Assembly: GCA_965649825.1 (NCBI GenBank)
Contig: OZ287696.1
Location: 725,101-789,100 of the forward strand
Length of the DNA stretch: 64,000 nucleotides
Source of the DNA: Penicillus capitatus
Taxonomy: Eukaryota > Plantae > Chlorophyta
Direction: 5' to 3'
The notes under the pieces: generated by a model
What the model was told of the DNA's origin: nothing
Databases searched by the model: none
Seen by the model: the letters and a program-made list of their open reading frames with translations, nothing else
Shown here: in pieces, positions 2,043 through 43,492 of the stretch
Layout of the letters: every line of letters starts with the position of its first letter
How positions within the stretch are numbered: the stretch's first letter is position 1
Position numbers and translations under genes: made by a program

Positions 2043-2764
2043 TGCTGTGCGTCATGTAGACGATCATGACGAATGGAAGCTGTGGTGTATCCCTGTAACA
2101 ATGTCACTGAGATCACACTCTGTATTGAAAATTCCTGCAATCGATTACAGGCAACATGCTAATTATCAACAGAACACCGAGGCTTATTCTCAAACGCATA
2201 TCATTTGCGAAGCTCGTGCTCTAAAAAGTCAGGCTTCTTAAAAAGTGCGAGTCAGTCTTTCACATTTCGGTTCGAAGTGAAGTCGTTTGCGTTTTGGTGT
2301 CCTGGTGTCTTCCCGGAGCACGAATTGAAGTTCATTTTCCTAACTTGCACGAAAGAAGTCCTAGGAGATCTCTACCAAATCTACACCAAAAACTACCAGA
2401 ATCTCAGCACTGTGTGTGATACGAACAAATCAGATTTGTCACCAACACAGATCCTATTTATCTTTTCGATGTCAAAGTGGTTTGCTCCCAAGGGGACAAG
2501 CTGTGTCGAAGCAGAGGCTTCAAAAATCGGCACTACAACACTCGAATAACTAACTACCTGACAGTCGCCCGAAAAGTGTCCGATGAGAAGCATCATATAA
2601 AATACAATCATCATCTGACCCTAAATGTTGATGAGAATATCCAACGCACCGTATCTACTGCGAAGTCTTGTGCGAACTTTGTTTTGTGATAAGGCAAGTA
2701 AGTGGCTTCTTAAGTTTCGTTCGGGGACGACCTTATGCCGAGTCTGTGCAGGTTACGACCGAAT

Positions 2765-5700: not shown

Positions 5701-5812
5701 AGATATTGGAACTTGGACTAAAGACGATGTTGAATGTTTTTTTCAACGGTTGAAGGAAGAATTCTTTGACAGTTTTCCTGGATTGAGGCAATACTTTAAA
5801 ACGAAGAACTGA
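2765..5812 (+). CDS. NACHT (NLR-like STAND NTPase) protein 1 with ~500-aa helical N-terminal domain; likely frameshifted and C-terminally truncated
   Basis: Walker A IYGNPGSGKT, Walker B LLVVDGLDE, and YQFPHLTFQEYFA. The N-terminal region aligns by eye with the gene at 32442-36847. Probable intron 4268-4319. ATG at 2765 (the ORF track starts at 2735). Confidence 0.85.
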   Translation: MQAPDEGPSEVGIPASGIGGRPSTKRLTVGQRNDPRLLRAAAMKYNIDSTKSLVVAYNKTTDKDERAVLLKWLRKYGRRREECLRLESVLEYSELSKIKSRSTHEDDVLEDLFRGLCSRLCQGEFLETYTAIALCRTLTHADPSSYGGTAQLVNVTKKLLGTLSPQPKLTRKNFAQYEATFQALHQAFFLLHMSNRNDIERKEKQDLRRAIAAKESELELSCKYYPLRFHLNTLRQAVERLELRDTPSHITQAMRCVACGLYVLLHVFHCFRNLTRCDIDPAAIADAYGKSQAYFVDMGVSRKAWFDSFRTLMAARLSASKTEMDLEHFGLAYRAAIEEQRTTRDREDSKALRFGIIQELGVLVNKGSPEHVCRDVALKLTELVARQAVDGGWIDDDDVLVALSDVLRDTDAITECNEETKEALRVLYESYRSGASKELTELMKAKDMEGRHRTEISQALQEERDHLCTKIGRDMGYVPPAVMNSNKEDLRRTYMKDDFATVTSLKGQGHVNESLVLEGGFSVRRRIPQTRQRHEAPRRYLRGGCRRAKNQSKRWYGRSCPGSGSERERRPSDREKDQAKEYYEQRTKVTKPIALDDLFKRRSLKPGDPESEVRRVLIYGNPGSGKTCITKVVANKWALREMAREFNAVYVVPVRVLNSDEPKGQQWTSLEEVISRICFSKRKRTSEYEDLALQIEDDLDSPLTLLVVDGLDEANDDAREIVSTIWERSCKVLFLSRPYNMRNIKTRVDVQVECLGFNDEQLRDYIESELAENEATNLIESLQSSTAMWEMAHIPVTAHILCSLSKDHGTATEERRKRASIFQIYKDMANYVWKRFKEKPAARNVKRCDLFDDLERIAFETLRSGLILIQPRLVIDYATSTDAAGIFKESGLLLLVMEGRQYQFPHLTFQEYFAISVRHEATATLDGMDLNTVIPSAINFSSAHGKGLFVIFISTPTTLSTPTEDDIMRSVMLHNVASEDIGTWTKDDVECFFQRLKEEFFDSFPGLRQYFKTKN
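4460..4471 (+). repeat. (GA)6 microsatellite inside NACHT-1 coding sequence
   Basis: GAGAGAGAGAGA at 4460-4471; removing one unit restores the spliced reading frame. Confidence 0.8.
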
Positions 5813-18224: not shown

Positions 18225-21200
18225 CTATAGATAAAGAGAGGCGGCAAAGATGACATCTCGTTTAACCAGGTCTTGAGCGGCATGTATCTTATCTTGAAGC
18301 TCTTGCTGTCCGGTCAGCACGACAGCGTCTTCGAGTTCCATCAAGACACGGTGCAGTTGACGGATCATTCTCACGGCCGAACCCTAAACATCTCCATTAT
18401 GTGAAGCAAATACATGATATTACGTCATAGCTTCGACCTCGTAGATGTCTGCCAATTTTATTAGTTCTCCAAAGGACGCGCCCTTGCTCCATGCGTACAC
18501 TGCCTCCATGAAATAGGGCCGGAAGCGTTGTGTGTACTCCTGGACATGCTTCACCACCTTGCACTCCGTTGCAGCTTTCCCAATGTCCATAGCTGTCTTT
18601 TCCAACGTCTGAAAGATGCTGGTCAACTCTGTACCGACCTAATCAATACATGACAGATTGGTGATGCGATGGAGAATGTTGACTTGTGTCTTTGGCGTAT
18701 TGGAGTCTGGTTGGATGACGCAGGAGACCAATGCGGCAATGAGTTCAGGAGACATTGCCGCCAGCTGTCCACTAAAGACCATTTCGGTTAGAATCAGTTC
18801 ATCCACTGTCTTGAAGCGCAGGGCAATACGCCCTTTCTGCAGCAACAGTCCGGTGTCGTCAATGTACTGCAGCTGAATGAGCAGTCGCAATGCATGGCGC
18901 AGTTCCTGTTTCAAGATCATGTCCTCTGCTGACTCCAGTTCACTCTCCAAGCTCTTCCTCTCATTCACGAGTCTCTAAAGACGGGACACGGTGAGGCGGA
19001 GATACAGGAAGGGCGAATTCGACGAGCTTCTCTGAGTGCTTGTCGAGACGAAGCTCGATGTCTGGAATCTCTCTGACGTCCCGATGAGCCAATGCCTCCT
19101 CCAAGCTCTTCGTTTTCTTCAGTACCTTCTTTAGTTTTCCACTATTGATCTACGGGGAACGATCCGCGAATGCACAATGGTATGGCAAGCAGATGGTACC
19201 TTCATGTCTTTGACGGGATCCAACAGCGGGATCTTGCCATGCTCTGCCGTGAGGCGACGGATGACTTCCTTTAGACGGTTATAAGCACTGAGGCGCCCGG
19301 ATGCAGATTTTAGGTTTGCAGGAAGATGCACGCGAACAGTACTGAAACTGTAAATCTGATCCAAAGAAAAGCCAACCACATGTGGCACCCCAGTCACGTC
19401 ACTCACTGGCAGCCACTCGTATCCATCGTCTTTCTTGCTTGAGTTGATCAAGACGTCCACAACGAAAGCAGAATCCGCCTCTTCGTCTCCTGACGTGTCA
19501 GCCTTCTTAAAATTGACTAACAGCCCCCAGCATCCTTCAGGTCCCTCTAGGATGCTCTTGGTGTTCCATTCCGTCTTTTTATTTGGTTTAGAGATCGACA
19601 GCAATCTTCCTGGATTCAGAAATGGCAGGCAGTGCTTTGCTTGTGTGATTTTTTGCCGAACGGTCGTCCAAAGCTCTTCTTTCTGTTCATAATCCTCAAT
19701 ATACTGAGCGATTCTTTGATCTGTTGCATCCGTTTGCAATGCCTCCGCCTCTCTTCGACACGTTTCGAGCCGTTCCCTGATCTGTGGCGCGGCAGCCTGG
19801 CAGAGAAACTGTTTGAAACTCTTGCGAATGATGATCTCTGGATCTCCACCCTCCATCTTCAGATTGTCGAGGATCAGTCGATAGCTGATGCGGAATTCAC
19901 TCAGGAGTGGCAAAGGCGTGCCACGAATGATGTCTCGAGTGGTGACGGCATCCATTCCTTTGTCCGCGATCATGATCACGATTCCTCTCTCGTCGATCCC
20001 TCTCCGACCAGCTCTTCCGCTCATTTGTATGTACTCTCCGGCATAGAGCCAACGAAAATGGCCGTCGTCATACTTCTTGGCTCCGGCAAAAACCACGGTC
20101 TTAGCTGGCATGTTCAGCCCCGTCGAAAATGTCTCCGTAGCAAATAAGATCTTGATAAATCCTTCTTGAAAGAGCAGCTCCACGATTTCCTTCACAATAG
20201 GCAGCAGCCCTGAGTGGTGCACGCCGATCCCTCTCTTAAGCATTGGCAGAATGTGTTGGACTTGAGGAAGACGGCGGTCTTGATCGGTCAATCCATCCAT
20301 TGCATTCTTCACGATCTGATCCACCAGCTGCTTCTCTTCGTCGTCGTTGACGTCCATGACAGCCAATTGCAGTGCCAAGAGTTCACAGGTGCGCTTGCTG
20401 AAGGCGAACACAATCACAGGATCGTAACCCCGTTGAAGCACCATCTTCATCAGCTTAAAGATATCCGATGTCTCATCGAAACTAAACTTGCTGTTCTTCG
20501 TTTTCTTCAGCTGCGAAGCGATGGAGTCTCCTGTGATATCGGCACACGCCTGCTGAAAATTCTCTTCGTAGAATCGACACTTTTCGTCGATCGTCATGTA
20601 CATCCCATCAGCTCCTGCCGGAAAGATATAGTGCTGCAACGGCACTGGACGATGTTCCGTATACACGACGTGACATTTCGATCCGTGGACCGTCGCAAAC
20701 CAGGAGGCGAATTCAAAGCCATTTGGCACGGTGGCGGACAGGAAGACAGCTTGTGTCTGGGAGGGCATCATGATGAGGCACTCTTCCCAGACGACGCCTC
20801 TCTCTTTGTCTCTCAGATAGTGCACTTCGTCAAACACAACAGACTTGATTTCGTGAATGATGCTTCTGTTTTCGTAGAGCATGGAACGGAACACCTCAGT
20901 CGTCACCACCAGACACGACGCATCTTCTCGGATGGTCACATCGCCAGTCAGCAACCCCACATCTTGGAAGTCATCGTACAACTCGCGATACTTCTGGTTG
21001 CTTAGTGCTTTTAGAGGAGACGTGTAGATCATCCGTGTCTTGTCCCTGTCACACCATCTCGGTCTGGATGAAGAGCAGGGAATGAATGTATCACCTCAGT
21101 GCCATGGCACAGGCGTATTGAGCCACAACAGTCTTGCCTGCTGACGTATGCGCCGAGACCAGAACAGAATCCCCTGATCACGTCACGTGTGGCAAGCACT

Positions 21201-21513: not shown

Positions 21514-22724
21514 GTCGACCGCGTCGGGTGGAGGTAAGACTGCAGCGAAGACTGCGTACGACAAGATATCTACGGTCGGCGATGATTCTGTTCGTGGCAA
21601 AACCATCATCGTCACAGGACCTACCAGCTGTGGGATGTCATACTTTGGAGACACCTTTAGCAAAACTTGTTCTCAGCGAGATTGGCACGAGAACTGCCTG
21701 GGAATTGGCGAGGCGTGGGGCACATGTCATTCTCGCCTGTCGTAATGTGGAAAAGGGAATGAAACTGAAACACTCTTTCGAAGAGCGAGCACGTCGCGAA
21801 GGGCTTTCAACGTTGTCCCTCGAAATCATGCAGCTCGACGTGTCTCAGCTGAATCCATCAGAGACTTTGTGTCGAAATGGCGATCCTCCGAGAGACCGTT
21901 GCACGTTCTGATCAATAACGCCGGGATCTTTGACATCGGCGGTATGATCGCTCCACAGCGTCGCGCGATGATCGTTTCTTGATGGTGCTGTAGGTCGCCG
22001 AAAGACCGTCGACGCAGGGGTCGAGCAGCACATGATGACCAATTACCTTGGTCCATTTCTGCTGACGCTGGGTCTATTGCCGTCCCTTAGAAGGGAGGCA
22101 AGAAAGGGAGAAGATTGCAGGATCGTCAACGTGGTGTCGATTCTGCACGAAATCGGCATTCTTGATATGAACGATCCCCTCATGGAGCAAACAGGAGCTT
22201 ACAGCTCGGATCAAGCTTACGGACAGAGCAAGTTGGCAATGGTTGCTTCTCCATTGGAAGGATTTCGCCTCACGTCTCCCTCTTCGCCGTGTCCTGCAGA
22301 TTCTGTTTGGAGCTGAACTGCAGAGGAGACTACCGATGGAGGACGGCATCAGCATCTACTCTCTGCATCCAGGAGAAGTCGTGACCGATGTGGTCAGAAG
22401 CCTTCCATCTGTCATGCAGTGGCTGTACAAAAACGTAACAGCCTACGCTCTCTTGACGCCCGAAGAAGGTAGAACGCATCGCAGCCGACGGGACGTGATT
22501 CTGACGATCGTTGCACAGGTTCCCGATGCACCGTCTACTACGCGACGGCCAAAAGTGCCATTGCCGAATCCCAACGGTATCTTGGATACTTTGGATCCAA
22601 CGCGAGGCCGGAGAGATCGAACAAAGATGCCTATTCGTCAGAGACAGCGAAGGAGTTGTGGAAATGGTCGGCAGACACCGTGGGGTTGTCATCCGAATGG
22701 GATCTGCCGCTGACATCTTGCTGA
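21512..22724 (+). pseudogene. Short-chain dehydrogenase/reductase (FEY/retinol-dehydrogenase-like) with three apparent lesions
   Basis: IIVTGPTS..IG, LHVLINNAG, HMMTNYLGPFLLT, YGQSKLA, LHPGEVVT. Intron 1 donor reads CT instead of GT (21628), the motif Gly reads GAG (21678-21680), and there is a 1-nt deletion near 21851. Confidence 0.75.
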
Positions 22725-22853
22725 TCACGAAGGAGCTCGTTGTAGGATGAACTGTGGCTACCTGGCCACGATCATTCGTTCGATCGCGAGAACTTCTCTC
22801 TCCTGATAACATCAGTCCACATGATTATCATTTAAGGTTCAATGTGCCAGTGT

Positions 22854-24090
22854 TCATGCAGACTCGTTTTCTTTTAATCGCCGATTCGATGTTTGCACGG
22901 CCGTTGTCCTTCTGCAAACGCCGCAGATTGCCTCATCTGCACAGAAAACGATGATCGTCTTATTTTGACGATCTCTGAAACCTACTTTCTTCGATGGCGG
23001 CCGGGGGATGTCTTCGTCGGCCTCGGTCTTGATCTTCTTCTTCCACTCGCTTTCTTCTCTCTCTTCACGTTCCAATATTAATCGTTCGCGCTTGAGCACT
23101 TCGTCTTCCCGTTTGCCAGCACGCATCTCTCGGCTATACGCAAAAAAACACACAGATCTCGCTGTAATAGTCGGCTTCTCTACTAAGGCTCACACGAACG
23201 TCTTCAAGAGTTTTTCTTACTCGTCTGTATGTCGTTTCTCACGCTCTGCGAGCGAAGCCTGCCATTGGTCGATCTCTTGAACTTCGATCTCGAGCATTCC
23301 ATTTCTCTTTTAATATACATTTGACATTGTATCGAAGAAAACAATGCCGCTAAGTGCGTAGATTAAAAGGGTATTGCTCGAATGAGAGTTGATGGACTTC
23401 TTCTTCATGAATACGTCTGTCTTCATCCAGTAATGTCTTCGCGAGTTCGAGATCCAATCGTTCCAGTTCAAGTTTCGATGCCTGTTCGTAGTTCTTCCTC
23501 GCGCCTGTCCAATTCTTCTTCGCACTTATCTAGTTCAGCTTCTCGCTTCTTTTAGATCATATTGATGTGTGCTGCTTGTAGCTTCAACTCCATAGCAGCC
23601 ATCGATCCCACCGCAAGGTAGTGCAGCCCAATGGCCGCGTCGCTAGCTCGAGGTTCGGCGTATTCCGGAGTTGGTGGAAGTAGAGAGGAGTTAAGATTCA
23701 TATCACACTGCATCCAGTCTCGCACTTTGGACACACAGAGCTACGCACAGACTCTCTTTGGTTGTTTCCCTTTCCTTCACTTCTAAGACAAGCACTGCTT
23801 TTTGATGGAAATCAAGTTTTGCTATGGCCATGTCGATCAGAGATGGTTATTATCTTCCCGTGCTTCAGGCACACGTGTTATAAGCAAGAAGAAAGCGTAC
23901 TTACGTTAGTGTTGCCAATACTGAAGATCATTTGTGCTCGCTTTTAGCACGTGAGTCTAAACGACGGCAAAAATTGTAGTTAATCTTTCCATTTTTCAGG
24001 CAAGACAGACTACAAGATTCTGCACTGATCCGCTTCGTTTTTTATTCTGTCAGAGGTAGTACCGGGGTGTCGAAGATGCGGAAACTCATG
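22854..24090 (-). pseudogene. Degenerate coiled-coil protein gene
   Basis: Heptad-like segments (KKREAELDKCEEELDRREEEL; KLELERLDLELAKTLLDEDRR; MLEIEVQEIDQWQASLAEREK) lie in different frames, separated by in-frame stops near 23552 and 23470. Confidence 0.45.
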
Positions 24091-24336
24091 CCACGATTCT
24101 GTACCTCGACGAAGCATCACGCTCGTCATTCCGATCCTCGTATCGTTTGTCTCACAGTGCAGTGCGCGCCGTGTGTTTTTGTCTATCCCGCGTTTGTGCT
24201 TTCTATGTGAAGTGTGTTATCACTAGATTCTTTTACAGAAGGAAAACGAAAGACAAGAGATAATTGTGTATCACCGGCCGGGAGAATGCAATGAAATGGA
24301 GTCCGTCCTAAAGTCAAGCTATGTCACACTCATGTT

Positions 24337-25835
24337 TCAGCGACGTCCGTTCGTCTTGTGCAAACGATGTGACCGCAACACCCGCTGTGAAGCCGTAAAT
24401 CTGTCTTCCCTAGCTTTTCTCGCCCTCTTCTGCCGTCTCTTGTGATGCTGCCCTCTAGTCCTTATTGCCGTCTTGCGCCGAACGGGAGTTGACGAGATCT
24501 TCCCGTTCTCTGGTGTTTCTGCATCGTGTCCTGTCTTCGGCGAGGCGGCCCTCGCTTGCGATAGCATCAACATCCCTGACAATGACTGACGCTCGCTCTG
24601 ATGGTCGGGATTCAACGAACACGAAATCTGCTGGACACATTTTGAATCAGACAGGACCGGAGGCCGTGTTTAGTGGACAAGACCTCCTGCTCAACTTCTG
24701 CCAGTAGTAGCTCATTGCGTTTCTTTTTGAGTTTCTCTCGCCTTCGAACCTGATCTGCCAACGTTCTGGCCACCTGAATCCCTCAAAAGATATACTTCCT
24801 GTGTGAACCGTATTGTTAAGCTGACCTCTAGATCTTGTCGAATGATATGGAGTCGATGGAGTTGTTCGTCCAACGGGATTTTGACAGACGGGACGTGCAA
24901 CGGAGCCAATGATCCTTCGAATGGACGTTCTGAATTATCATCTCCTCGTTTCTGACATGCATTTGCCGTTCGACTTTGAAAGGAACGATCCAAAATCACC
25001 TGAACAAACGAACACATGACTCTCGGAGGATGATCGCATGCAGAAGACATTGAAATGGGCATACACTCCATGGAAAAACGTTCCACATTTCTGACAACAG
25101 CGGCTTCTTTAATTCCCTTCTCTTGCAGATCCAGTAGTCATAAACGCGTTCAACCTCGCCTCTCCCGCAGTCGGCAAGCGATGTGACAGCTTCTTCCAGT
25201 GGTAACACCTCTTCCTCATGTGGCACGCTTAGACAAAGACGCCCTGCAGATCCAGCCTCTGTGTCCACGGCGTCAGCCCGATGGCCGTACCGTTGAGATG
25301 CTCGGCTGAGACCTTCTCTCTGAGCTGCTGGAAATGAAGTTTCTCCAGTGACGTCATGATGCGTTCAAATGCAAAGAGCGATACCTGACATTGCGCATCT
25401 CACACTAGCAGAGTGAGATGCCGATTCAATACTCACGCGCCATTTCTTCAGTTGATCGCTGTCATCGTCATCCGCCAAGTACTCGGCGTTCTCTATGGAC
25501 GGAGGACGAAATCGATGAAACGGAGCCTCCGTCAGCGGAAGGGAAATGCTCTCGCTTTCGTTCTTCGACGCCACTGTCCACTTCGGTATGTCTATCTTCG
25601 TTCGCTGCTCCGTCTGCTCGAGCCACGGTTCGGTCTGTATGACATCTCCTTCGCTGTCGAGGACTTGCACCTGGTCGCGCCGTTTGCCCTCTTCGGACTG
25701 CAGCCAACGGTAAAGCTCTGGATGTCGTTTCTGCACTTGAGGAGTGAAACAATAAACAGGAACAGGTTCCGTGATATACAGCGGCCTCGCGCGGAATTGT
25801 CGGACTTCTTTTTTCTCGGCCCTCGATTCCTTCAT
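24337..25835 (-). CDS. EPL1: Enhancer of polycomb-like protein (NuA4 subunit)
   Basis: N-terminal FRARPL, then FERIMTSLEK, VYDYWICKRRELKKPLL and IRQDLE|VARTLADQVRRREKLK. Confidence 0.85.
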
Positions 25836-25856
25836 CGAAAAAAATTCTGGCAGTTA

Positions 25857-28800
25857 ATGAGAGTGAACATGCATCGACGCGAGGGACGCGAGCGTGAAGT
25901 GACGGCAATATTCGAAGCGCTGGGACGCGAAAGCGAAGCACAGGAACTGACGACATACGTCGATCAGCAGGCGCTGAGACTCGAACGACCCGTTTTCCTC
26001 GAACTCCTGCGCGACATCTACGGTCGAATACGCGAATATCTCACAAAGTGAGGAACGCTCTCTGCTGTCTCTCCTTCGAAAGGGCGTTCTTCCTTCAGTG
26101 GGTCTCTGCTTGTCGTCGTCCGTGCGGTTGCCCAATTGGTCCATGTCGAAGTGAGCGCCTTGCTGCGGGATGTGTGACATTGACATCTGACGTTGGCTTC
26201 AGTTTCTGAGAGAGGAATCATCCAAAGCGAAGGATCTCGTCGGATTTCTGACAGCGGTGTTCGACAGTGTGGCCCTGTCCGATGCGGCGACAAAAGATCG
26301 AGTACTGCACAGTGCAGTGGACAGCTTTGGTCGACTGGTAAAACTGGGAGGAGCGATGACAGCTTCCGAAACGAGCAGACACATCGAAGACATGTTGCAG
26401 CTGCTGAACGGCTCTGACGCCTTCTCATCGGCCGTGGCCCTCCGGCTCTTGGCTGAAATTGCCAAGAACGCCCCGGCACGGTTCAACCTCTACGCAGACA
26501 AGTTTGTGGCCAACTTCTACCACTTTCTCTTCCACGAAGATGCCTCTTTACAACAAGATGCCATCAGCGCTCTAAAGGTGAACGCCATAATGTACAGTAT
26601 CTTGTCTGGATGTGCGGATCGTGGCAGGAATGTCTGGGTGTGGTTGCGCAGAGAGCTTCCGGGAAGAGACAGGGATGGTTCCATGATCTGGCTCAGAATC
26701 TGATGACGGTGGTGATGGAGAACACAAAGCCGAAGATGCTAAGGGCTCTCGTCGCACTGCGTTGTGTCATTCAGCACTCGTCAGGAAACCTCTTGGCGAT
26801 CTTCCCTGCGCTAAGCGACATGGTGACGTCGCTTATGTCTTATCCGGATCCATCTATTCAGGCAGAAGTCATCCTGACGATTCCTGTCCTGGCACAGATC
26901 TGCCCTCAGAATTTTGCCCAGTCTATCTGGACGGCGTCGATGGATTACTACCTATCCTATCTCCACAACAAAACGTGCGAATGCTTGTGATTCTGGGAAA
27001 GATCAAAAGCTGTCTGCTGCAGACACGAGGTTCTGGTTTTGGATTCCATTGCGAAGCTCATGCAGATATTGGTCGGTATGGAGTGGATGGATGCCACGGA
27101 ACAGATCCAACAGATATCGATATCCCTTAAAGAGATCTTGACCGATGCATCCTCGCAAACGCCAACTCGTCAAGCTGCAGTGAAAGTGAACGTGTCTGAA
27201 GATCTGCGGCAGTGTGCAGAGACTGTTGTGTAGTGCGTTGGTGATTTGACAGCGGCAATGCAAGGTCCTTGGAAAGAAGAAGTGCTGCAGCTACTCCCTG
27301 TGCTGTTGACGACGACAGTGGATTCCATGCTGATTGATTGCATGCACCAAATCTCTTGTGCATTTCCCCAGACGCAGCCTACCATCCAGGCAGCTTTTCT
27401 TCAGGCTATCACACAGTTTGGATTCGCACAACGAGGCGTGTCTTCAATTATCATCACCCTGCTTTGAATTGTCTGTGGATGCAGAGCATTTGTTGACAGT
27501 CTATCAAATCCTGAGCACCTTTCACTTTGACTTAGCGACGAACTTTCTGGAAGACCTTTCGGCTTCATTGAATCTCATTCTTTCTGGTGATGCTGATGAG
27601 GAACTGCGTTTGACGGCGGCCAAAGCATGCCTCAACATCTTATCCCGCACCATGGACGACTCGACAGGTTCTTGCATGCACTCATCAAGCCGTCTGTACC
27701 GAGATGTGCCCAGGAGACGAAATCTGTCAATGGATGGATCAATTGTGCGACCATTTGACCATTCTGGCTGTTATGGATGTGTCAGACGATCTGCGTTTTC
27801 AGTTGCTAACCGAGATGTGTCGCCAAGAGGAACTGCATCTGAGGTTGGCACAAGATACGACCATCCGTCGGTTGTCCAGCGGACTGTATGACACATCGCT
27901 CCCCATTCGACAAGCATGTGTTCAGCTCATGGGTCGACTCTCGGTTCATAACTTTACGGCCGTCATGCCACTGATGCGAGAACTGCTTCTGAAAGTGATG
28001 GAGGATTTCAAGTTTGAAGGGGACACGGCAATCACCTCCGCCCTCCTATCAGACGCAGCTCTGTTGCTGAGAACACTCTTGGTGGAACATGCCGACGTGA
28101 CAGCACCTATCTGTCAGGAAATCATGGAATCTCTGCTGCATCGCCTGGAAGTGTACACCACTCAGAAAACAGCACAACGCAGTGTGAAGGATCCTACTGC
28201 CAAGTCGATCTGCAGCCTCCTGGTCTGTCTGAAGGAACACGTCCGTCGAAGTTCCCAATCACTCGTGAAGTTGAATGTCCCTCGAATGGCAGTCATTCTG
28301 ACGGCGCTCATCAAAGAAAGCAATGACGAAGGGGAACAGCTGATGGCCATACAGTTGATCAGCCAGATCTGTGACGTGACTGGAGACAGTCTGCTACAGC
28401 ACTTGAGGATCACAGAGCTCATGGCTTGTGTAACAGAGCTTCGAAAAGAGCCAAAGAATGCAGATATCATCGATCAAGTCATTCAGAGCCTCACCGAAAG
28501 AGACTCCGTCTTTCAGTCGCTCATCTCTCAGGCAGATGTGACATCAGAAACGGAAGATCTGCTGTTCCTAAATGAAATGCCGTTCTTTCCAACGGATGAA
28601 TCGACTGTTGGCGATGAGGCATTCTATAGCTCTGCTGCGATTCATGTATCTCTGGCCGTTTTGGAGGATGCTCGGAACACAGACTATGAGAGCATTGTCA
28701 AGGGTCTGATGTGTATCTTTGGCCGCCTGCAGAGATCTGGTGTTTTCTATCTACAACGTGTGATACCTGTACTGGCCAAGATCATTCGCGAGGCAGATGA

Positions 28801-30102
28801 TAAATTGAGGCTTGTCCTTTTCCAACACCTCAGTGACTTGGTCAGAATTGCTGGACCCGATGTACGTCCATACTGCTCAGCCCTGATGGATCTCTGTTCG
28901 CATTTCTGGTCTGGATCTTCAGCCCAGACAGTGCACATCCTCAATCTCATGGCAGAACTGGCGCGTGCTGTTCAGAGCTCCTTCGCCAATTTCTTAAAGG
29001 ATCTCATTCCGCGTTTGAGTGATGTTCTTTCCAACCCGAAAGACTTTCAGTTAGTGGAACCGACATTGGGACTGTTACAAGCTTGTGATGCCGAACTAGG
29101 AAGCTTTTTCCCCGTCTTGTTCCCCATTGTGCTGCAGTTTCTTCAGAGAGTTCCCATCTACGAAGAACCCATTCCGCTAAACATACAACGAGAAGTGCTT
29201 CGAACACTCCGGTGTATACTGGCTGCTGTGAACTTCCGAGAAGAGCAGAAGTATCTGATGGCATCTAAACTGAACATGACCTTAATCGAACTCCTCCGCC
29301 AAGAAGAATCCCTCAGATCCGACATCGAAGACACACTTACTGTCATTCTCTCTGTCTTGGGGCCAAAGATATCGCGCATCTTTGCTTGGCAGATCAATCG
29401 AGTAAAGCCACTAGAGCGTCCAAAGAATCTAACACATCACTCGTGATTTGCAGGCACTGGAGGATTCAGAAGAGCAAGGTCTATTGCATAGAGGTCTTGA
29501 GAGATTGCTGGATCCTGCATTTGAAGAAGCGCATGTTTACACACCGGATGAGATTGCGCATCTGTTTTCAATCCCATTCAATCCCATACAGCGACAGGCA
29601 TCGCAGTCAGGTGGCCCACAGATCCTGTCGCCGTATCTAAAGCGATTTGGCTGTAGATCTGTTTCAGCTGGACATCGTTGAATTGGCTCGAGCATGGGAC
29701 ACGACAGACAGAGGCACGAGAGAAGACTGGGAGGAATGGATTCGTTCTCTCAGCATTGAACTGCTGCGTCAGTCGTCATCTCCTGCTCTCCGTGCCTGTC
29801 ACTGTCTAGCCCAGATCAACCCTTCCGTGGCAAAGTGGCTATTCAAATACAGCTTGCTCTCTGTGTGGTCTAAGCTTGATGATCCCTACCGTGCTCAGCT
29901 GCTGGAGGCATTCGAAACAGTGCTGATGCTGCCGGCTATGCCGCTGGAAGTGGTGCTCCCCATCGTAAGTCTGGGCGAGTACCTTAACTTTATTGAACAG
30001 CAAGAGGTATCCGTGGCGTCTGATTTGACAGCACTCGACACGCTGGCTCAGAAATGTGGTCCGCACTCGACCGTGCTTCACTACCGCATGCGTTCCATGT
30101 AG
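25857..30102 (+). CDS. TOR-like HEAT-repeat protein (N-HEAT and M-HEAT only; ends at start of FAT; no FRB or kinase)
   Basis: TOR-type motifs GGAMTASE, LAEIAKNAP, IRQACVQLMGRLSVHN, TREDWEEWIRSLSIELLRQSSSPALRAC and LAQKC...LHY. Stop TAG at 30100-30102. About 1,200 aa after removing the short introns. Confidence 0.88.
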
Positions 30103-30105
30103 AAT

Positions 30106-32109
30106 TTACACAGCCTTGTCCTTTCCTTCGACCTTTGGCTGATCAACAACAGGTCTGTTTTCTTTTGATGATGAACAGCTTGGCCACTGTTCTGCGTATC
30201 TCTTGGATTTCTTCCGTGGTTGTTTCCGTCGGCATGGCTTGGCTTGTTCCTTCATCTTCTGGTTCTCTTCTTTGAATCCGCTCTCAGATCCCTCGCAAGG
30301 CAGCACATCCTCATCGCAGTAGTCATCAGGATATTCGTATCTTAACGGTGGCTTGGGAATATATCTAAACTCAGTATCTTCTCACCATGTCTTTGGTAAA
30401 GACGGCTTACCTTCCCAGTTTTGGAGAGTATGACTCGAAATGCAGCAGGATGTGACGGTTAGAGATTTTGAATGGGCCCTCAAGGGATTGAAGCTGCTCT
30501 TGCGCCACATACTGCAGCATTCTTGGGCCGCCAAACGAACGAATGGCATCATTTTCATCTAAATGAACGCAACACAGTACTTCAACTCGAACGGTAACTG
30601 GAGATGTCACCTGGGATGATACTGTAGAATGGTTGAACAAAGTTTGTATCCATGTCCGTCACGTATTGCGGATGCCGGCAGACACGATCCCATCCATAGA
30701 TCACTCCTCTGTATCCATGAAGCCTGTGTCGAACCACCTGGGCAAAACACAAAGCCCTGCACTACAGGGATGCTTTGCCCAAGGCTGCCGTACTTGGCCA
30801 ATCGCAAAATCAATGCCTCTCGTGTTCATATGCTCCTGTCTGTTCTTCTCTGTCTCTGCTAATTGCTTGGCATAGGTCGTGTTCAGAAGCCTCAAGGCTA
30901 ACAGGGCACGTGATAGAGCCTCTTCCCCTTCATCCCTCTACCAGAAGAGATACATATGCGTTGAGATTAACATTCGGTGAGAGGACTTGGAGATTCCGAT
31001 TCGTGTGGAAACTCCATCGGACAACGTTTCGAAAGGTGACCGCATCTTGAACCGCGACCTTAGCCTCGGCCATCTCTGGACTCACGAGCTTCAGGTGTTC
31101 CTTCTTGACGCCGAAAGGAATCCGTTCATTAACGCGACTCCACCGAAGCAAACTTCGGTAACACGTGCGAACCAAGGCACGATGTGTCATCGCCAACAGC
31201 GCAGAGTGACGCCTGTCACGTCGCAATGATGTCGCTTGCGGTCATTACAGACAGACACTATGTTCGACGCCTCCTTCCTTTACTCCGTCTATCCGCCGTC
31301 CGATTCTCAATGGATTTACTGGGACGCACTCTGCCACCTCTTTGATGGACACTACGGTTGTTGATTTGGTTCCGGTAAGTACGTGCATCGTCACAGGGTG
31401 GATAGGCATCGATGTCGTGATCATCATCCGACGAGACGCAGTCCACATCGTCTGCTCCATAACGCCGACTGACGGGCATTGCATCAGCGGATCTATATCA
31501 ACACCATAAGTGTGTGAAATCTGAATACTGGGCAAGGAACTGTCGCTGCGTGGAATGGAAATGTGTGACCACATGATCTAGACTGCACAGTTCGCGGAGG
31601 AGATGGGATGGCTCGATATCGCCTCTCTGCTCCAAATGCGTTCTACACCACACAACACCTGCCTGAGTGGATATCACACGCAATGCGTCGAATCTGACTC
31701 GTGACTGGTCAAGATATCGATGATTTCTTGCAGTTGGTTGAAGGTGGGTCCACGTGATGTCTGATTTTGGATATGTCGGGTTCTTTGTAGGAGTCTTCGG
31801 AGATCGCCTAGGAAGAAGGAATGGTCCAGTCCAGCAAATCCTTCGTCCGGTAAGTCATTGGTAGCCTTTCCGCGTTCGAGTGGCATCTCTCGTCCGTCGC
31901 CGAGCACAACGCAGCCGAAAGGGACAGCGCACAGAGGACATCGAGGGTTCTGACGCACTCTGGCCCACTGGACGATGCAGCCAATGCTGGAAGGGAACAG
32001 AATTTGACAGGAGTGCATTGGACGAAGTGCTGGACCAGAATTGGTGGTCGCATTCGGGGATGGATGCCACGTTGCTCGCTATATCTTCCAAACAAATTGC
32101 ACACCGCAT
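30106..32109 (-). CDS. RING-HC finger protein (multi-exon; C-terminal part unassigned)
   Basis: CAICLEDI...CDHQF|C..CIVQW...CPLC (C3HC4). Downstream exons only partly resolved; possible 1-nt indel near 30262. Confidence 0.7.
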
Positions 32110-32441: not shown

Positions 32442-35400
32442 CTAGTGCAAATTGAAAGGACGTGGCAATTCTGGGTAGTCTTTTGCAAATAGATCCATGA
32501 TTTTAGAATGGAGTGGATAGAATGCATTTCGTGGGTATGAGCCTACGGTCTCGTATCTATCGAGGTGCGCCGTGAGCCTCAGAGTTCCGTCGCGTGCCTC
32601 CGGGCCAACAGTTACCGGCACTTCGATCAGAAGATTCAACAGGCTCTGCGCGGTGGTGTCGTTTTCGCCTCTTTCTTGAATGGCATTGTCAAAAACTCGG
32701 CGGACATCTTCGAGACCGGGCCCTTGAAATCCGTCGCCATTTTCTTCTACGTCCAAGAGCTTCCCATGACAGCCTGATTGGTGTTTGTCCTTGTTTTCGT
32801 GTTTCTTTGACGTTTCTGCTTCCGATTCTTCTGCTTCTTCCACGTCTGGCTCTGCTCTTTTGTCGAGAAGATCTTTCAAAACTTTAAGGACATCGGGGTC
32901 TTCCTCAATAAGACGTTTGAGGGCCTTCATCGCCGCCGCCGCCTGAAGACCAACGTTTTCGTCAATATGGTGGGATTCCGACTCTAGCTTCGATACTATG
33001 TCTTTTGCATTTTGGAACTCCTCTCGTGTGCGAGCGAAAAGTTTTTTCATCACCGATGTACGCTCTTCATCTTCATTCTCTTCGCATTCGAGCCATCGCT
33101 CGTAGGCATCGCTGACGTGGTGTTTGGATTTGTCGCTCTGAAGACAGGCGCAATCAAGAAGCGCATTCGTCACCAAACGCACAGCTTCAGGCTTTTCCTT
33201 GCACCAGTTCTCAAGCCATTCTACTGTATTCTTGACATCAGAATCCCAGCACCAGTTAGAGAAAAGTAAAAGCGCAGTGCCTAAGATTGAACGATCCTTA
33301 TTGTGTTCCAGGCGATGGTCTTCATTCTCTCCCAGACACCTCCAAAGCCTCAACCTGATTTCTTCTGTGCAATCCTTAAACCGAGATTTGACGTGTTTAT
33401 CTTTGCAACAATGAATGACCAATGCATTCCATATAAATGCCTTCACGACCACCAAGTCAACGCAACAATCAGCTTGTCCAACGCATTTCTGTTCAAGCAG
33501 ATTATAAAGGTCATTACAGCGGTCGCCTGGAAAGATTCTGATGAGACATTTTGCCATCTTCACACCTCGGACGATTTCCTTTCCACGCTTGTAGCGTAGT
33601 TTTTGTTTCAATTGCTCGTATACTTTTTCCCAGTGCTTGGGCGAGTACTTCAGCAATCTTACAACGTGCCCGAATCTATACTCGTCCACCAGTTTTTCGA
33701 GTCTCGATGTCTCGATGACTGAATCCAGCACTTCCGAAAATGTATTGAAGATGTTTGGGAGTTTTCGAAACGCTCTGGTTGCAATGTCCCACAGTGCAGT
33801 CGTAGGATCCGTTTTGGCAAGTATACAACTCACGGTGTCTACGAGACGAACGATCGATTCATTTTTCAGAAGTTCGTTGGTCACCGAGTCCACGGCGCCG
33901 GCTAACCATGCATTGAGGATGCGAAGCTTCAGAAGAAAATGCTGTATGCCAATCATCTCCGGGGTCTCTTTGTCCACTAACGAAATCACGTGGAGAAACG
34001 TTTGCACTTTGTTCTGTTCCGCAAGTGATTGTATCGCAAAAGAAACAGACACTCTGTATTTTCCGAGGTATCTTCCAGACTCGATCGTGGACACCACTGA
34101 GTTCCGGATCTTTTTCTCTGGACTCTGCAGGCAGTGAGCAAGGTGTCTTCCCACAAAGTACTCTTGGAATGTGTTGTGGGGAAAACGGTACTGATTTTCT
34201 CTCGTCGAAAAAAACAGTAAACCATTATGTTTCAAGATTTCCCAGACATCGCTATCCGTCGTCTGTCTTGTGACGATAAGTTGACTAATGTAGTGTTGAT
34301 CATTGCGCCATGCTTCGAATGAGATCTTTTCCAGCCAAGAGAAGATCTCTCCGCGGTCCACTTTTTCCATGTTCGGTCTTGACGAGAATCTCGCCCAGAC
34401 GTAGTTCACCATCTTCGTGATCAGAGAATACATGGATCTCTTCTGATTCTCATCATCGGGCCCCAATTCGCCTTCTCTCCACAGTGTGCATACGATATAG
34501 AGCATCATGGGGATGCGCATAATCTCTGCTATCACGGGACAACTGCCAACGGAGTCAATGAGTTTCTCTCCTTGCTCGCCATTGAGTATTTTTTGCACGT
34601 AATTCGTCTGTTGCTCCTTGTCGAAGCCCATACACTCCAACTCGCGATCGGCATATCGCCGCTCGTCGTAGAGATTATGCGGGCGACTGATGGTGAGAAG
34701 GGAGCATTCTTTACGTTTTATGTCGGAGACTATTTCTCTTGCTTCTTTGTTCCCCTCATCCAACCCGTCCAAGATGAGCAGCGTTTTTGGATTGTCGAGA
34801 TCGTCGTTGACTTGCGTCAAGAGTGTCGACGGCATTGAATTATGGCGATCGGAATACCACATATTCACAATGGTCGACGCAACTATGTCCCATTCTCTGA
34901 CATCTTCACTCGGGCGATTGAGCTTTCTCACTGGCAGCACGTACACCATTTCGAATCGATTGCCCAGTTTTCCCGTTGCCCATTTGTGTGCCACTGATTT
35001 GGCGATGCACGTCTTCCCTGTGCCAGGGTCTCCGTACAACAGCACTCTACGGATGTCTGCCGCCTGCCCCGTCTGATCTTCGAAAGGATTGAACAGATCT
35101 TCGAGAGAAATGCGTTTCAGGACTTTCTGGCTTTGGCTGCCTTGTTCCTGTGCTACACCAGCCGAACGCCTTCTCAGTTGTCTACCTCCGCTTTCGTCAT
35201 TACTGCCCAGTTCAGGTTCGTGGACACAAATGGCATGTTGCATTTTATCGACATGAAAAGGTTCACCTTGACCAATCGGCGGCGGCACCTTCACAAAACT
35301 GTTTGGCAAAAGGAGAAGAGAAGCAAACGACGCACCGTCACATTTTCGCTGTTGCAGTATCTTTCCTTCAGGTATTCAATGTTCGAGGCAATCTCGTCGA

Positions 35401-36847: not shown

Positions 36848-37017
36848 CTGCCTGGAAGGGAAGTTGTTGGAAGGAACGGTAATAGGCTAAACGTTTTCGT
36901 TTTCTTCGCGAACTGAGTAAGTTCACAGCAGAGTTCTTAACAAGAATTCTCGAAATGGTCAATTACCATTGTGTGCATTGATTTACGTCATCCTTGAGTT
37001 TGGGAGATATTCGCGCC

Positions 37018-39389
37018 ATGCGAAGCAACGAGCCACAGTGGGCCGTTCTCGAAATGGAAAACGAACCTGAAGATGCGCAGTTGTCGCCCATCTACGATTT
37101 CAACACCCGAAGGTGAAGATTGACCATCGGATGACCACGCCTTATCCATCCCTCATCCAGAAACCATTGGAAAGAATGGCGCACGTATTCGCGGAAGCAT
37201 TACACCCGTTGGGTAGAGATCCGTAAGGACAGCGTGTTGTTCTCTCTTATCCCTTGCTCTCTGTTCTGTGCAGTGATTTGGATTGTCCTCTGTTCATTGA
37301 CCATCACCTTCCTCTGTTTGTACATCTCTGCCAAAGATTTAAAGTCTTCACGTGCGGACAACCACGGCGGACAGGAGTCGCTCGGAGAATCGGCCAATTC
37401 TTTGTTTTACTCGGAGACAGGCTACAGCCCCTTCCGCCGCTTTGAAATGAACTCGGATTATCGTGACGTGCCACGCACGCAAACATCATCAAGAGGGATG
37501 GTGGCATCGGATCATGGGAAGTGCTCGGACATGGGTGGGAAGATCCTGAACTGGGGTGGTAATGCTATGGATGCCGCCGTGACGACGGCGCTTTGCATCG
37601 GCATCCGTAATCCATTCGCAAGCGGCACGGGTGGAGGAACGTTCATACTAGTTCATCTGAAGGACGGGACATCCACTGTGATCGATGCACGGGAAGTTGC
37701 GCCAGGCCATGCCACGCAAGACATGTTCGAAGGTAGAGGACAGACAGCAGATCACCCTTGTGCTCTGTCTGAGATGTCAACCAGGTCACGCTCGCCTCGA
37801 TTCAGCTTCGGGAGGACTGTCGATTGCGGTTCCGATGGAATTGTTGGGTCTTGAGATGCTGCATAAAAAGTACGGGGACTTGACATGGAAAGAAGTAGTG
37901 GAGCCCGTCATACCTCTCGCCCGAGATGGCTTCGAAGCCAATCCTGAGCTGGTGATTACTATGCAGATGAACTTTACACGCGACAACATCACCACAGTGC
38001 ACTTCTCCATAACCGTGATCTAAACTGAGATGACTGTTGCAGATGCCGGACTCGATCAAAGAGACGTTCTTTATTCTCGACGAAGGTGTTTGGCGTCTGC
38101 CAAATGTCGGGGAACGCTGCTGCAAGAGGCCAGTATTGGCAGCGACACTGGAGCGCACAATCGAAGAAGGGGTCCAGCATATGTATAACACAGAATGGGG
38201 CGATGATTTGATCAGGGACATTAATGAGCTCCCGTTTCCAGGAATCTTTGAGAAGAAAGATTTGAGGCGTTCCAGGCCCGTCGTCAAAGAGCCGATTAGG
38301 GGAAAGGTTTTCGGAATGGATGTGGTCTCTGTTCCGCCGCCCTCTTCGAGTGCGACACTGATCATGGCTCTGCAGTTTATGGAATCGTATTCCAATCATG
38401 CAAACCAGACACTCAACTATCACAGAATGGTAGATCTGCATCGACCCCTTGAACTATAACCGCCATCTGTTTCAGGTGGAGGCCATGAAGCATATGTTTG
38501 CTGTCCGTTCGCATTTTGGAGATACTGGCACGGAAAACGAGTTCCTGGATATGAACAAAGTGCTCAAAGCGATCTCGACATCATCATTTATCGAGGAACT
38601 GAGGTAAAGTCCATTGCTGTCACGATAAGCGGATACACGTAGAGTGGCATGGCAGACACATCACAACGGATTCTGGCGTCCAAGATATATATGCATACGG
38701 TGGACGCTACTATCGGACGACTGACATCCTGTTGGATAAAGGAACGTCGCAGATTGTAACGGCGGATAGATATGGCAATGCTGTGTCCATGACCACCAGC
38801 ATCAATTGGCATTTCGGATCGTTGATGATTGGAAAGAGAACTGGACTTCTATTGAACAACCACATGGACGACTTCACCACCCCTGGCGTGCTAAATCCAT
38901 CCAGCAGTGCCCAGTTCCTGAAGAACGCGAGCAATTTCATCGCTCCGGGAAGAAAGCCACTATCGTCCATGTCCCCTCTCATCTTCACAGAGAACAAGAA
39001 GCTGAAACTGGCCATCGGCGCTTCCGGAGGCTATCAAATCCTCACGGCGTTGCTGCAGGTGCTGTACAGGCATTTTCGCATGGGAACAGATCTTGAGACG
39101 GCCATCAATACCGGAAGACTTTCGTGCTACGCCGATGTTGTCTATGTGGAAGATGTTCAGAGAGGACATGCAGAATTCGATACTTCAGATGAAATCCTCC
39201 AGTTCCTCGAGAGCCTCGTCTGCAGCTCTGTGCACGTCTCCTATGTCTAAGCGAGCATGCATTTAGGGACATCACGTGCAAACGGACCAGCGTCTTTCAA
39301 GCGTCGTGGCGGTGGAGGTGACCGAAGAGGGCAAGTTTCGTGGATTTGTCGATCCGCGCAAAGATGGGACATCCGCTAGCAATGTATGA
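37018..39389 (+). CDS. GGT: Gamma-glutamyltranspeptidase copy 1 (type II membrane anchor)
   Basis: GMVASDHGKCS, GGNAMDAAVTTALC, SGTGGGTF, IDAREVAP, IAVPMEL, catalytic GTSQ, SMTTSINWHFGS, PLSSMSP and DPRKDG. N-terminal hydrophobic helix. Confidence 0.92.
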
Positions 39390-40012
39390 CGTTCTTGACG
39401 GCACTTAGTCGTCTACAGTCGTTTCAGCGCTTCGCGCTTTCGGACGTACATGAAATCACGTTCGATCGCTTTGTAAGCACGCTTAGAGAGAACCTCATCT
39501 ATCTAGTTTTCCTTAAATTTTTTCTTCGGACATCACACTGGAAGGTACCCTTTCCAAACTCGCAGAGAACAGCCATTTGGCAAAAAACCGCATAACGGAC
39601 GACTTCGCAAATGAATCAGGCAGCTTCATGAGACCCATTGTTCACGAAGCGTGTAATCTGGATGATGTCGTTTCACTCAGCGACGGAGACTTGATGAAGA
39701 TGCACTGTCCCTTCGATCGGCATTGTCACGCTCTCGCGTTAATGATTTTCATTTCTGTGCTTAGTTACATCGTGTCTGCCTTATTTCGCAGAGGTCCTCT
39801 CTTCCAACGGGCGCTTACTAACGGTTTACGACATCCTAGAAGCGTATTTCTCTGGCTCTGAGAGCTGGCTGACTCACCTACCGAGGGAAGTCTTGTCACA
39901 TTTAACGTATAAATAGGCGAATTCGAATCTTAGAAAGCCCCGCTCCGTAAGGTTACAGGTTACAGAGTCTTTCGCTGTACACCTCTGAAGCGCGGCTGAC
40001 GTGACAGTCGTC

Positions 40013-42383
40013 ATGCGTAGCAACGAATCGCAGCGGGCTGTTCTCAAAATTAAAAACGAACCCGAAGATGCGCAGTTGTCGCCCATCTACGATTTCAACA
40101 CCCGAAGGTGACGACTTGCCATCGGATAGCTACGCCTTATCTATCCCTCAAGGAACCATTGGAAAGAATGGCGCATGTATTCGCGGAAGCATTCCAACCG
40201 TTGGGTAAAGATCTGTAAGGCCAGCATGCTGTTCTTGCTTATCACTCGCTCTCTGTTCTGTGCAGTGGTCTGGATTGTCATCTGCTTTTTGACCAACACC
40301 CTCCTCTGTTTGTACATCTCTGCCAGCGATTCGAAACCTTTACGTGCAAGAAACTACGACACTGAGGACTCGTTCGGAGAATCGGCCGGGTCTTTGTTTT
40401 ACTCGGCTTCAGGCTACACCCCCTTCCACAATTTTTGTTGAACTCGGATTATCGTGACGTGCCACGCACGCAAACATCATCCAGAGGGATGGTGGCATCG
40501 GATCATGGGAAGTGCTCGGATATGGGTGGGAAGATCCTGAACTGGAATGGTAACGCTATGGATGCCGCCGTGACGACGGCGCTTTGCATCGGCATCCGTA
40601 ATCCATTCGCAAGCGGCACAGGTGGAGGGACGTTCATACTGGTCCATCTTGACAACGGGACATCCACTGTGATCGATGCACGGGAAGTTGCTCCAAAACG
40701 CGCGACTGAAGAAATGTTCAAAGGTAGAGGAAGCGACAGATCACCCCTGTTCTCTGTCCAAATTGTCATCCAGGTCACGCTCGTCTTGATTCAGCCTCGG
40801 GAGGATTGTCGATTGCGGTTCCGATGGAATTGTTGGGTCTCGAGATGCTGCACAAAAAGTACGGGAAGTTGACATGGAAGGAAGTAGTGGAGCTTGTCAT
40901 ACCTCTCGCCGAAGATGGCTTCGACGCCAATCCCGAGCTAGTGTATATGCTGCGGGAGGGCTTTACACGCTCCGGCGTCACCACAGTGCACTTCTCATAG
41001 CCGTGATCTAAACTGAGATGACCGTTGCAGATGCCGGACTCGATCAAAGAGACGTTCTTTATTCTCGACGAAGGTGTTTGGCGTCTGCCAAATGTCGGAG
41101 AACGGTGCTGCCAGAGGCCAGCATTGGCAAAGACTCTTAAGCGCACAATTAAAGAAGGGGTCGAGCATATGTATAACACAGGATGGGGCGACAAATTGAT
41201 TAGGGACATTAATGAGCTCCCGTTTCCAGGAATCTTTAAGAAGAAAGATTTGAGGCGTTCCAGGCCCGTCGTCAAGGAGCCGATCAAGGCAAAGGTCTTC
41301 GGAATGGATGTGTTGACTGTTCCGCCACCCTCTTCAGGCGCGACACTGATTATGGCGCTTAAATTTTTGGATTTGTATCACGATCATCCAAACGAGAATC
41401 TCAGCGACCACAGAATGGTAGATCTGCATCGACCCCTTGAGCTGTGGCTATCTGTTTCGGGTGGAGGCCATGAAGCATATGTTTGCTGTCCGTTCGCATT
41501 TAGGAGATCCTGGCCCGGATAATAAGTTCCTGAATCTGGACAAACTGCTCAAAAATATATTGAAAAAATCATTCGTCAAGAAACTTAAGTAAAGTCCATT
41601 GCTGTCACGATAAGCGGACACACGTAGAGTGGCATGGCAGACACATCACAACGGATTCTGGCGTCCAAGATATATATGCATACGGTGCGAAGTACCACTA
41701 TAGGCATGAGGTACTGTTGGATGAAGGAACGTCGCACATTGTTACCGCGGATAGATATGGCAATACTGTGTCCATGACCACCAGTATCAATTGGCATTTC
41801 GGATCGTTGATGATTGGAAAGAGGACTGGACTTCTATTGAACAACCACATGAACGACTTCACCACCCCTGGTGTGCTAAATCCATCCAGCAGCGCCCAGT
41901 TCCTGAAGAGCACGGACAATCTCATCGTTCGGAGAAGAAAGCCACTATCCTCCATGTCCCCTCTCGTCTTCACAGAGAACAAGAAGCTGAAACTGGCCAT
42001 CGGCGCTTCCGGAGGCTATCAAATCCTCACGGCATTGCTGCAGGTGCTGTACAGGCATTTGAGCGTGGGAACAGATCTTGAGACGGCCATCAATACCGGA
42101 AGACTTTCGTGCTACGCCGATGTTGTCTATGTGGAAGATGTTCAGAGAGGACATGCAGAATTCGATACTTCAGATGAAATCCTCCAGTTCCTCGAGAGCC
42201 TCGTCTGCAGCTCTGTGCACGTCTCCTATGTCTAAGCGAGCATGCATTTAGGGACATCACGTGCAAACGGACCAGCGTCTTTCAAGCGTCGTAGCGGTGG
42301 AGGTAACTGAAGAGGGCAAGTTTCGTGGATATGTCGATCCGCGCAAAGATGGGACATCCGCCAGCAATCTTTGCCACTGTTGA
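40013..42383 (+). pseudogene. GGT: Gamma-glutamyltranspeptidase copy 2, probably disabled
   Basis: Paralogue of copy 1. A 1-nt deletion in the T-run at 40432-40436 gives a stop at 40439-40441. The intron acceptor at 41459-41460 is GG where copy 1 has AG (38474-38475). Confidence 0.75.
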
Positions 42384-42660
42384 CGGCATTTAGTCGTCCA
42401 CAGTCGTTTCAGCGATTTGTGCTTTTAACCGGGCACGCGAAATTACGTTCGATCGCTTTGTAACCGTGTTTTGAGAAAACCTCATCTATCTGTTTCCTTA
42501 AATTTTTCTTCGGACATCACACTGGAAGGTACCCTTTCCAAACTCGCAGAGAACAGCCATTTGGCAAAAAACCGCATAACGGACGACTTCGCAAATGAAT
42601 CAGGCAGCTTCATGAGACCCATTGTTCACGAAGCGTGTAATCTGGATGATGTCGTTTCAC

Positions 42661-43492
42661 TCAGCGACGGAGAATCGATGAAGATGCACTGTCGCTTGGA
42701 TCGGCATTGTCGCGTCTTCGCATTCTGGACCGTCTGAAACTGGGTGCATTGCACATCGTGACATTCAACGGGCTTCCTGAACTCGTAAGAGTCACTCTAC
42801 ATCCACATACACTCCGAGAGCCTGTCACATCAAGCAAAGTGTGACCTGTGCCGTTTCCCATCATGCGTCGGCGTATCAAAGACTTCGACATCGTGGGATC
42901 CCGTTACGACAAAGAGATTCGAATGGCGCAGCTCTGGGATGTCTGCGAGATCCGACAATCGAACGTAGGCATTGGACAGGATCTCTTCATCACGTTCTTG
43001 TGCCCTCATGGCTTCGTGAACCCGACAAATGTCTTCTTCGACTCTGCGTCGAGCGATCTGCGATGCACAGATGATCGATGCAATGACGAAAGCGTCATTA
43101 CCTCGAGTTGCGCAATACGCGTATGCAATGCCGCGATGCGTTGGGCTTCATCTGGATCTGATGGAGAGCCTGCGCAGTTACCAATCCACTTCATTGTGCT
43201 CTTACGGCATCGAGACACGAGGTCGACGCCTTCGAGCACATTCGTCACATCATAGATGCGTCGTTTCTTCACCTACACGCATAACGCCATCCATCGCCGC
43301 CACGATCGATACCTTCATTGTATCACGGACGTTCAGCACAGATGCTGCGTAGGAGAGGTCCACGATACCATCAGGCGAACGCGCCATCAGGTCGATGAAC
43401 TTTGACGCGAGTGCTCCGAGTGAATTGTCCGACGTGGCGTCTCCATCCGTCTTCTGCTGTCGTCGCGCGGTTCTTCGAGTTGCGCGTTCCAT
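42661..43492 (-). CDS. E2F: E2F-family transcription factor (winged-helix plus coiled-coil/marked box); start codon uncertain
   Basis: SLGALASKFIDLM...DGIVDLSYAASVLN|VKKRRIYDVTNVLEGVDL...KW, then NAYVRLSDL and a final exon RVTLTSSGSPLNV. Confidence 0.85.

Follow-up and report, generated by a model that had tools for sequence, protein, structure and literature searches.

A TOR-like gene of Penicillus capitatus that encodes the HEAT solenoid without the kinase half, and its relatives in bryopsidalean algae

The window analysed here is a stretch of 64,000 nucleotides from the green alga Penicillus capitatus (contig OZ287696.1, positions 725,101 to 789,100 of the forward strand; coordinates below count from its first letter). 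Its plus strand carries, at 25857-30102, a gene related to TOR, the central growth controller of eukaryotes, whose architecture is almost invariant. The gene consists of ten exons and nine GT-AG introns of 46–52 nt, and encodes 1,267 amino acids in an uninterrupted frame. The product spans the complete alpha-solenoid of TOR, from N-HEAT through M-HEAT to the first helices into FAT (equivalent to mTOR ~20–1400), and has no catalytic part. A first-pass annotation, made from the letters alone, had described an intact HEAT half of TOR, without a kinase and ending at the entrance to the FAT domain, with one spliced frame of ~1,200 amino acids. The frame is as described, apart from its somewhat greater length, and sequence homology, the protein family, the predicted fold and comparison with relatives all support the description as a whole.

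TOR-like pieces were located on the plus strand by six-frame translation of 25800-30300, and the exon model was refined against the same gene in a sister species (locus L007). Exon 1 (25857..26047) begins with the ATG at 25857, encodes the canonical TOR N-terminal helices, ends at the donor GTGAGG and shares 96.9% amino acid identity with the sister species. Exon 2 (26099..26150) is a micro-exon of 52 nt that encodes GSLLVVVRAVAQLVHVE; it is conserved in the sister species and homologous in the proteins of a further orthologue (locus L001) and of Bryopsis. A single first intron of 163 nt was also considered and ruled out, because the alignment with the sister species places this conserved 52-nt exon inside it. 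The acceptor CAG of exon 3 (26203..26577) is kept in the sister species. That of exon 4 (26628..26974) lies 24 nt upstream of an alternative, giving ECLGVVAQ, and these residues agree with those of a relative (P0050) and of the sister species. Exons 5 (27023..27185), 6 (27234..27437), 7 (27487..27667) and 9 (29454..29610) follow the spliced gene model. The long exon 8 (27714..29401; 1,688 nt) covers the middle HEAT region, with the Pfam domain mTOR_dom at roughly 28570-28850, and shares 94% amino acid identity with L007 and 50% with L001. Exon 10 (29657..30102) runs from EDWEEWIRSLSIELLRQSSSPALRAC...LAQKC to the C-terminus ...LHYRMRSM and corresponds to the start of FAT in canonical TOR. It is the segment closest to canonical TOR, at 42% identity with a canonical chlorophyte protein. 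The introns are strikingly short and uniform, measuring 39–49 nt in L001 (6230-10429), which is without one of the nine.

The protein ends in ...LAQKCGPHSTVLHYRMRSM (also written ...LDTLAQKCGPHSTVLHYRMRSM) and is followed directly by TAG at 30100-30102, a few codons past LHY as first read. Some other ulvophytes use TAG and TAA as glutamine codons. This code was rejected for the present gene, as there are no in-frame stops in 1,267 conserved codons and read-through of the TAG would meet a TGA after just 22 further codons. A convergent gene on the minus strand, which encodes a YccV-like domain (PF08755), has its last exon at 30106..30381, with its TAA (TTA on the plus strand) at 30106-30108. An opposite-strand gene thus ends 3 bp away, in agreement with the initial description. 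The resulting junction, TAG-AAT-TTA (30100-30108), is conserved in the sister species, as is the open frame of the YccV-like exon, whose TAGAATTTA sequence and junction are the same there. With convergent stops only 3 nt apart, the 3' untranslated regions of the two genes must extend into each other's coding exons.

The identity of the solenoid was examined at the level of both sequence and fold. Pfam matched mTOR_dom (PF11865) in the window protein at 5e-11, and did not match FAT (PF02259), FRB, PI3_PI4_kinase or FATC. A phmmer search against PDB sequences returned only mTOR and yeast Tor2 chains (E ~5e-46), in an alignment that reaches mTOR residue 1400, a position we take to be ~18 residues inside the region where databases begin the FAT domain. 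The N-terminal 65 residues, read by eye and checked against relatives, fit the pattern of the canonical TOR N-terminus, and nothing is therefore missing from the front of the solenoid. Residues 69–1267 were modelled with AlphaFold2 from an alignment of 26 sequences; the model consists entirely of helical repeats, with a mean predicted local distance difference test score (pLDDT) of 84.5. When this model was compared with the PDB by Foldseek, the 16 best matches were chains of mTORC1, mTORC2 and the yeast TOROID (E 1e-30 to 3e-19), and HEAT proteins of other kinds, CAND1 and importins among them, ranked behind TOR, at only 1e-12. The TM-scores were low (~0.37), as expected for a long flexible solenoid that is modelled alone.

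The absence of FAT, FRB, kinase and FATC sequence from the rest of the window, reported in the first-pass annotation, was confirmed with two sets of tblastn probes. The FAT, FRB-kinase and FATC regions of mTOR gave only chance-level matches in the 64 kb (best E 1.3), and the C-terminal half of a real chlorophyte TOR (locus L004) gave nothing at E <= 1. Flanks of ~10 kb around the orthologues in L001, L007 and Bryopsis (locus L008) are likewise free of FAT or kinase sequence. The annotation had also allowed for transcripts that splice from the end of the gene to distant FAT/kinase exons. No such exons are present within the window or in the 10 kb downstream in the three other species, which excludes splicing to nearby ones.

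The end of the gene is not an error of assembly. Two contigs of the metagenome assembly ERZ25074695, ctg340460 (844 kb, 99.4% identity) and ctg339103 (106 kb, 99.76%), are collinear with the window past the stop codon and into the downstream genes. The sister species, represented by a 1.39-Mb contig at 184x coverage in assembly ERZ26696514, has the same gene with the same stop codon and is collinear over the 3' end. Three collinear contigs and a sister species exclude the misassembly at ~30100 that had been named as a way in which the gene might be spurious. Positions 19648-40100 of the window are identical to neither of the two metagenome contigs (L002 and L003; 99.4% and 99.76%), so at least three near-identical haplotypes or strains of the alga have been assembled.

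The gene belongs to a family with a fixed end point. A word-indexed protein search with the whole window protein found no match. Relatives were recovered in two other ways, by a search restricted to the last exon and by an exhaustive phmmer search. The former identified open reading frames (ORFs) at 71%, 65%, 58% and 54% identity in four other samples. The latter covered 1.8 billion representatives of a library clustered at 50% identity, and among the best 150 of its 1,072 matches at E <= 0.001 several pieces of the family rank above all canonical TORs. One protein that does so is GMH32551.1 (BSKO_00385) of Bryopsis sp. KO-2023, deposited as a 'hypothetical protein', which has 1,313 amino acids and aligns to residues 21–1157 of the query at 29–30% identity. 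The orthologue at L001 (Logan SRR33785046) is intact, with nine exons and 1,287 amino acids, and is 47% identical to the window protein. A scan of JGI metagenomes with the family alignment yielded no relative. The frame is intact in four species. The Bryopsis gene model comes from an annotation aided by RNA-seq and so indirectly supports expression; it is the sole support of this kind for the family.

Eight members, each from a different sample or species, were aligned with six canonical TORs. All eight end 8–17 residues past the motif A-x-K-C, where the canonical proteins run on with ALHYKELEF and the FAT repeats, and at least seven samples besides that of the window carry the gene in this shortened form. 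The tails that follow the motif in the family are variable in both length and sequence, like true C-termini. The downstream neighbours also differ: the window and L007 share the YccV-like gene at a distance of 3 nt, L001 has an EBP gene at 313 nt, and Bryopsis has an unrelated gene at 2 kb. A shared end with differing neighbours indicates that the truncation is older than the divergence of these algae and independent of the local context. The last ~170 residues are the best conserved part of the protein within the clade of the window (59–72% relative to L001), and residues 1101–1200, where FAT starts in TOR, form the stretch closest to canonical TOR (41%).

Comparison with the sister species also allows the selection acting on the gene to be estimated. 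The ten exons are of equal length in the two species, with no indels over 3,804 nt; identity is 87–95% in exons and 76–83% in introns, and differences at codon positions 1, 2 and 3 number 60, 34 and 303. By the Nei-Gojobori method, the rate of nonsynonymous change (dN) is 0.033 and that of synonymous change (dS) 0.45, which gives a dN/dS of 0.07. The neighbouring gene for the helicase MTR4, used as a control, has a dN/dS of 0.06. Purifying selection thus constrains the TOR-like gene as tightly as it does a housekeeping helicase. Together with the lack of indels, this value excludes a decaying or recently truncated copy, and the neutral evolution that a dN/dS comparison with relatives might have revealed is not seen.

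Relative to canonical TOR and mTOR, the window protein is homologous over the whole N-terminal solenoid to ~mTOR 1400, retains mTOR_dom and has mTORC1, mTORC2 and the TOROID as its best folds, but is without the FAT body, FRB, PI3/PI4-kinase and FATC, and its family forms a separate clade. N-terminal halves of canonical TORs from plants, chlorophytes, amoebozoans, fungi and others share 35–42% identity across supergroups, whereas the Bryopsis member of the family shares 21–26% with any of them. A neighbour-joining tree of four family members and 59 canonical N-terminal halves (1,069 columns) recovers the family as monophyletic on a long stem, with a bootstrap support of 100/100. Among canonical TORs, those of chlorophytes (Picochlorum and a related sequence) show the smallest distances to it, which weakly suggests a green-algal origin. 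At 92 columns of the alignment the residue is identical in the window, L001 and Bryopsis proteins yet rare among canonical TORs. No single canonical TOR shares these rare residues in excess; a chlorophyte donor lineage is therefore only weakly indicated, by the distances.

Several lines of evidence combine to favour, on balance, an old and selected HEAT-only derivative of TOR that is specific to bryopsidalean algae, coexists with a canonical TOR and works without catalysis, as a scaffold or as a competitor. If the gene is taken to be real, it is likely to be a paralogue alongside a canonical TOR. This is favoured because the HEAT half has drifted far outside the canonical range while MTR4 of the same genome is normally conserved. 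The MTR4 ORF (19131-21032) is 65% identical to MTR4 of Caulerpa lentillifera and 54% to that of Bryopsis sp. KO-2023, and the other named matches, mostly from land plants with some from other green algae, fall at 44–51%. This pattern marks the host as bryopsidalean and rejects a filamentous fungus, to which the NACHT ORFs and the 48-nt introns might have pointed. The family would most likely have originated when a green-algal TOR was duplicated and one copy lost its catalytic half. In mTORC1, dimerisation of TOR and the binding of RAPTOR both run through the HEAT half. By analogy, the algal protein may act by binding through the same surfaces; a free HEAT half could associate with TOR itself or capture RAPTOR and further partners. 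The outcome would be either a scaffold or a competitor or modulator that tunes the assembly of TORC1. A precedent for a protein derived from a phosphatidylinositol 3-kinase-related kinase (PIKK) and kept for non-catalytic scaffold work, as proposed here, is TRRAP/Tra1, which is catalytically dead. It retains FAT, pseudokinase and FATC, whereas the algal protein is without the whole C-terminal half.

Some observations weigh against a scaffold or competitor that coexists with canonical TOR. The tree that sets the family apart was obtained by a simple distance method on a fast alignment. No canonical TOR from the same or any bryopsidalean genome was found among the candidates examined, and the candidate canonical pieces P0011, P0006, P0012 and P0120 were traced to other samples or to unlabelled organisms. 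The argument for a paralogue draws on the divergence of the family and on the near-universality of TOR. Finally, the last exon, at the start of FAT, is the most TOR-like part of the gene, and this could equally mean that the protein docks onto a FAT-kinase partner.

Such docking is the basis of a different explanation, in which the single TOR of these algae has been split between two genes, this one for the HEAT half and another for the FAT-FRB-kinase-FATC half, whose products assemble non-covalently into a working enzyme. The break falls exactly at a domain boundary, the alignment running through mTOR residue 1400. Moreover, mTOR-deltaN (~1376–2549), the engineered catalytic fragment from which the mTOR-mLST8 crystal structure was obtained, retains stability and activity together with mLST8. 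Its start nearly coincides with the natural end of the algal protein (~mTOR 1400), and the algal gene encodes the complementary piece. The exon that abuts FAT is the most conserved within the family and the most TOR-like (41–42%), and the whole gene is constrained as tightly as an essential one. There is also no canonical bryopsidalean TOR among the labelled matches, and no ulvophyte TOR among the 30 matches with labels (from the best 150 of 1,072 in the 50%-clustered library), although this is uninformative as an absence. However, a sole TOR would be expected to keep its RAPTOR and dimer surfaces conserved. The HEAT half is instead far more divergent (21–26%) than canonical HEAT halves are across supergroups (35–42%), in a genome whose MTR4 is normally conserved, and the variable tails past A-x-K-C are unlike a conserved docking end. 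A split TOR is regarded as the main rival, though rather unlikely. Outright loss of the TOR kinase from the lineage, with the HEAT-only remnant kept for a scaffold function unrelated to TOR signalling, would agree with strong divergence from canonical TOR under strong constraint and with the 92 family-specific conserved columns. Nothing in the data shows such a loss, it is not expected in free-living photosynthetic algae, and TOR loss is to our knowledge found mainly in reduced parasites; we consider it improbable.

It is very improbable that the gene is an artefact or unfinished, whether through misassembly at ~30100 or because FAT/kinase exons are reached by long-range or trans-splicing. A GT does overlap the stop (AT|GTAG at 30098-30101), and the gene is squeezed by its neighbours, with 3 nt between stops and ~20 nt between start codons. 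Against this, the contigs of the three near-identical haplotypes and the sister species, which comes from another sample, are collinear over the junction, the last exon of the neighbour is a conserved open frame, and the same end occurs in species with other downstream genes. FAT and kinase sequences are missing from the ranges searched, and the residues before the stop are not conserved as those at an exon junction would be. A young truncation or a decaying pseudogene of a duplicated TOR, the former having been among the initial readings, can be given almost no weight. Truncated copies of this type are known from Fusarium oxysporum, in which accessory chromosomes carry TOR paralogues beside the core TOR, some of them truncated and one without the kinase domain (PMC6001611). 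These copies share ~96% identity with the core copy, are restricted to particular strains, have in part been disrupted by transposons and show hardly any expression (PMC6001611). The algal family resembles them in consisting of truncated TOR versions, but is old, order-wide, cut at the same residue and under strong purifying selection, with 21–26% identity to canonical TOR. Young truncation is refuted by the common end point in relatives down to 29–30% identity and by the dN/dS of 0.07; no indels have accumulated over 3.8 kb, and intact orthologues persist at 47% and at 29–30%.

A HEAT-only TOR derivative has been kept by strong selection across an algal order in which the body is one giant multinucleate cell. 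The protein either regulates TOR complexes without catalysis of its own or makes up one part of a split TOR. In both cases the family is a natural experiment on the TOR solenoid without its kinase and offers a new handle on growth control in coenocytes. A split TOR, if true, would mean that a PIKK has been divided in nature at the very boundary where mTOR is cut for structural work. No description of the family was found in the literature on kinase-less or HEAT-only TOR and on TOR in Bryopsis, Caulerpa and the Bryopsidales, and the genome papers for Bryopsis, Halimeda and Ostreobium make no mention of TOR. Bryopsis can be cultured, and RNA interference works there (PMC12961179).

Several further features of the window were observed. 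Upstream of the TOR-like gene, a minus-strand ORF at 25368-25853 (MKESRAEKKEVRQFRARPLYI...) has its ATG ~20 nt from that of the TOR-like gene. A 4-kb segment (21581-25627) that contains most of this ORF and a gene resembling short-chain dehydrogenases is absent from the sister species, in which MTR4 is the immediate upstream neighbour of the TOR-like gene and all that persists of the minus-strand ORF is a stop-bearing remnant of its first ~55 codons. Two long ORFs of this green alga encode NACHT NTPases (NLR-like STAND proteins), one at 2735-5812 on the plus strand and one at 32442-35309 on the minus strand; the sister species has the latter as well. Farther downstream, exons resembling those of gamma-glutamyltranspeptidase occur in a tandem duplicate of ~2.7 kb, the copies of which (37014-39737 and 40009-42721) share 89% identity.

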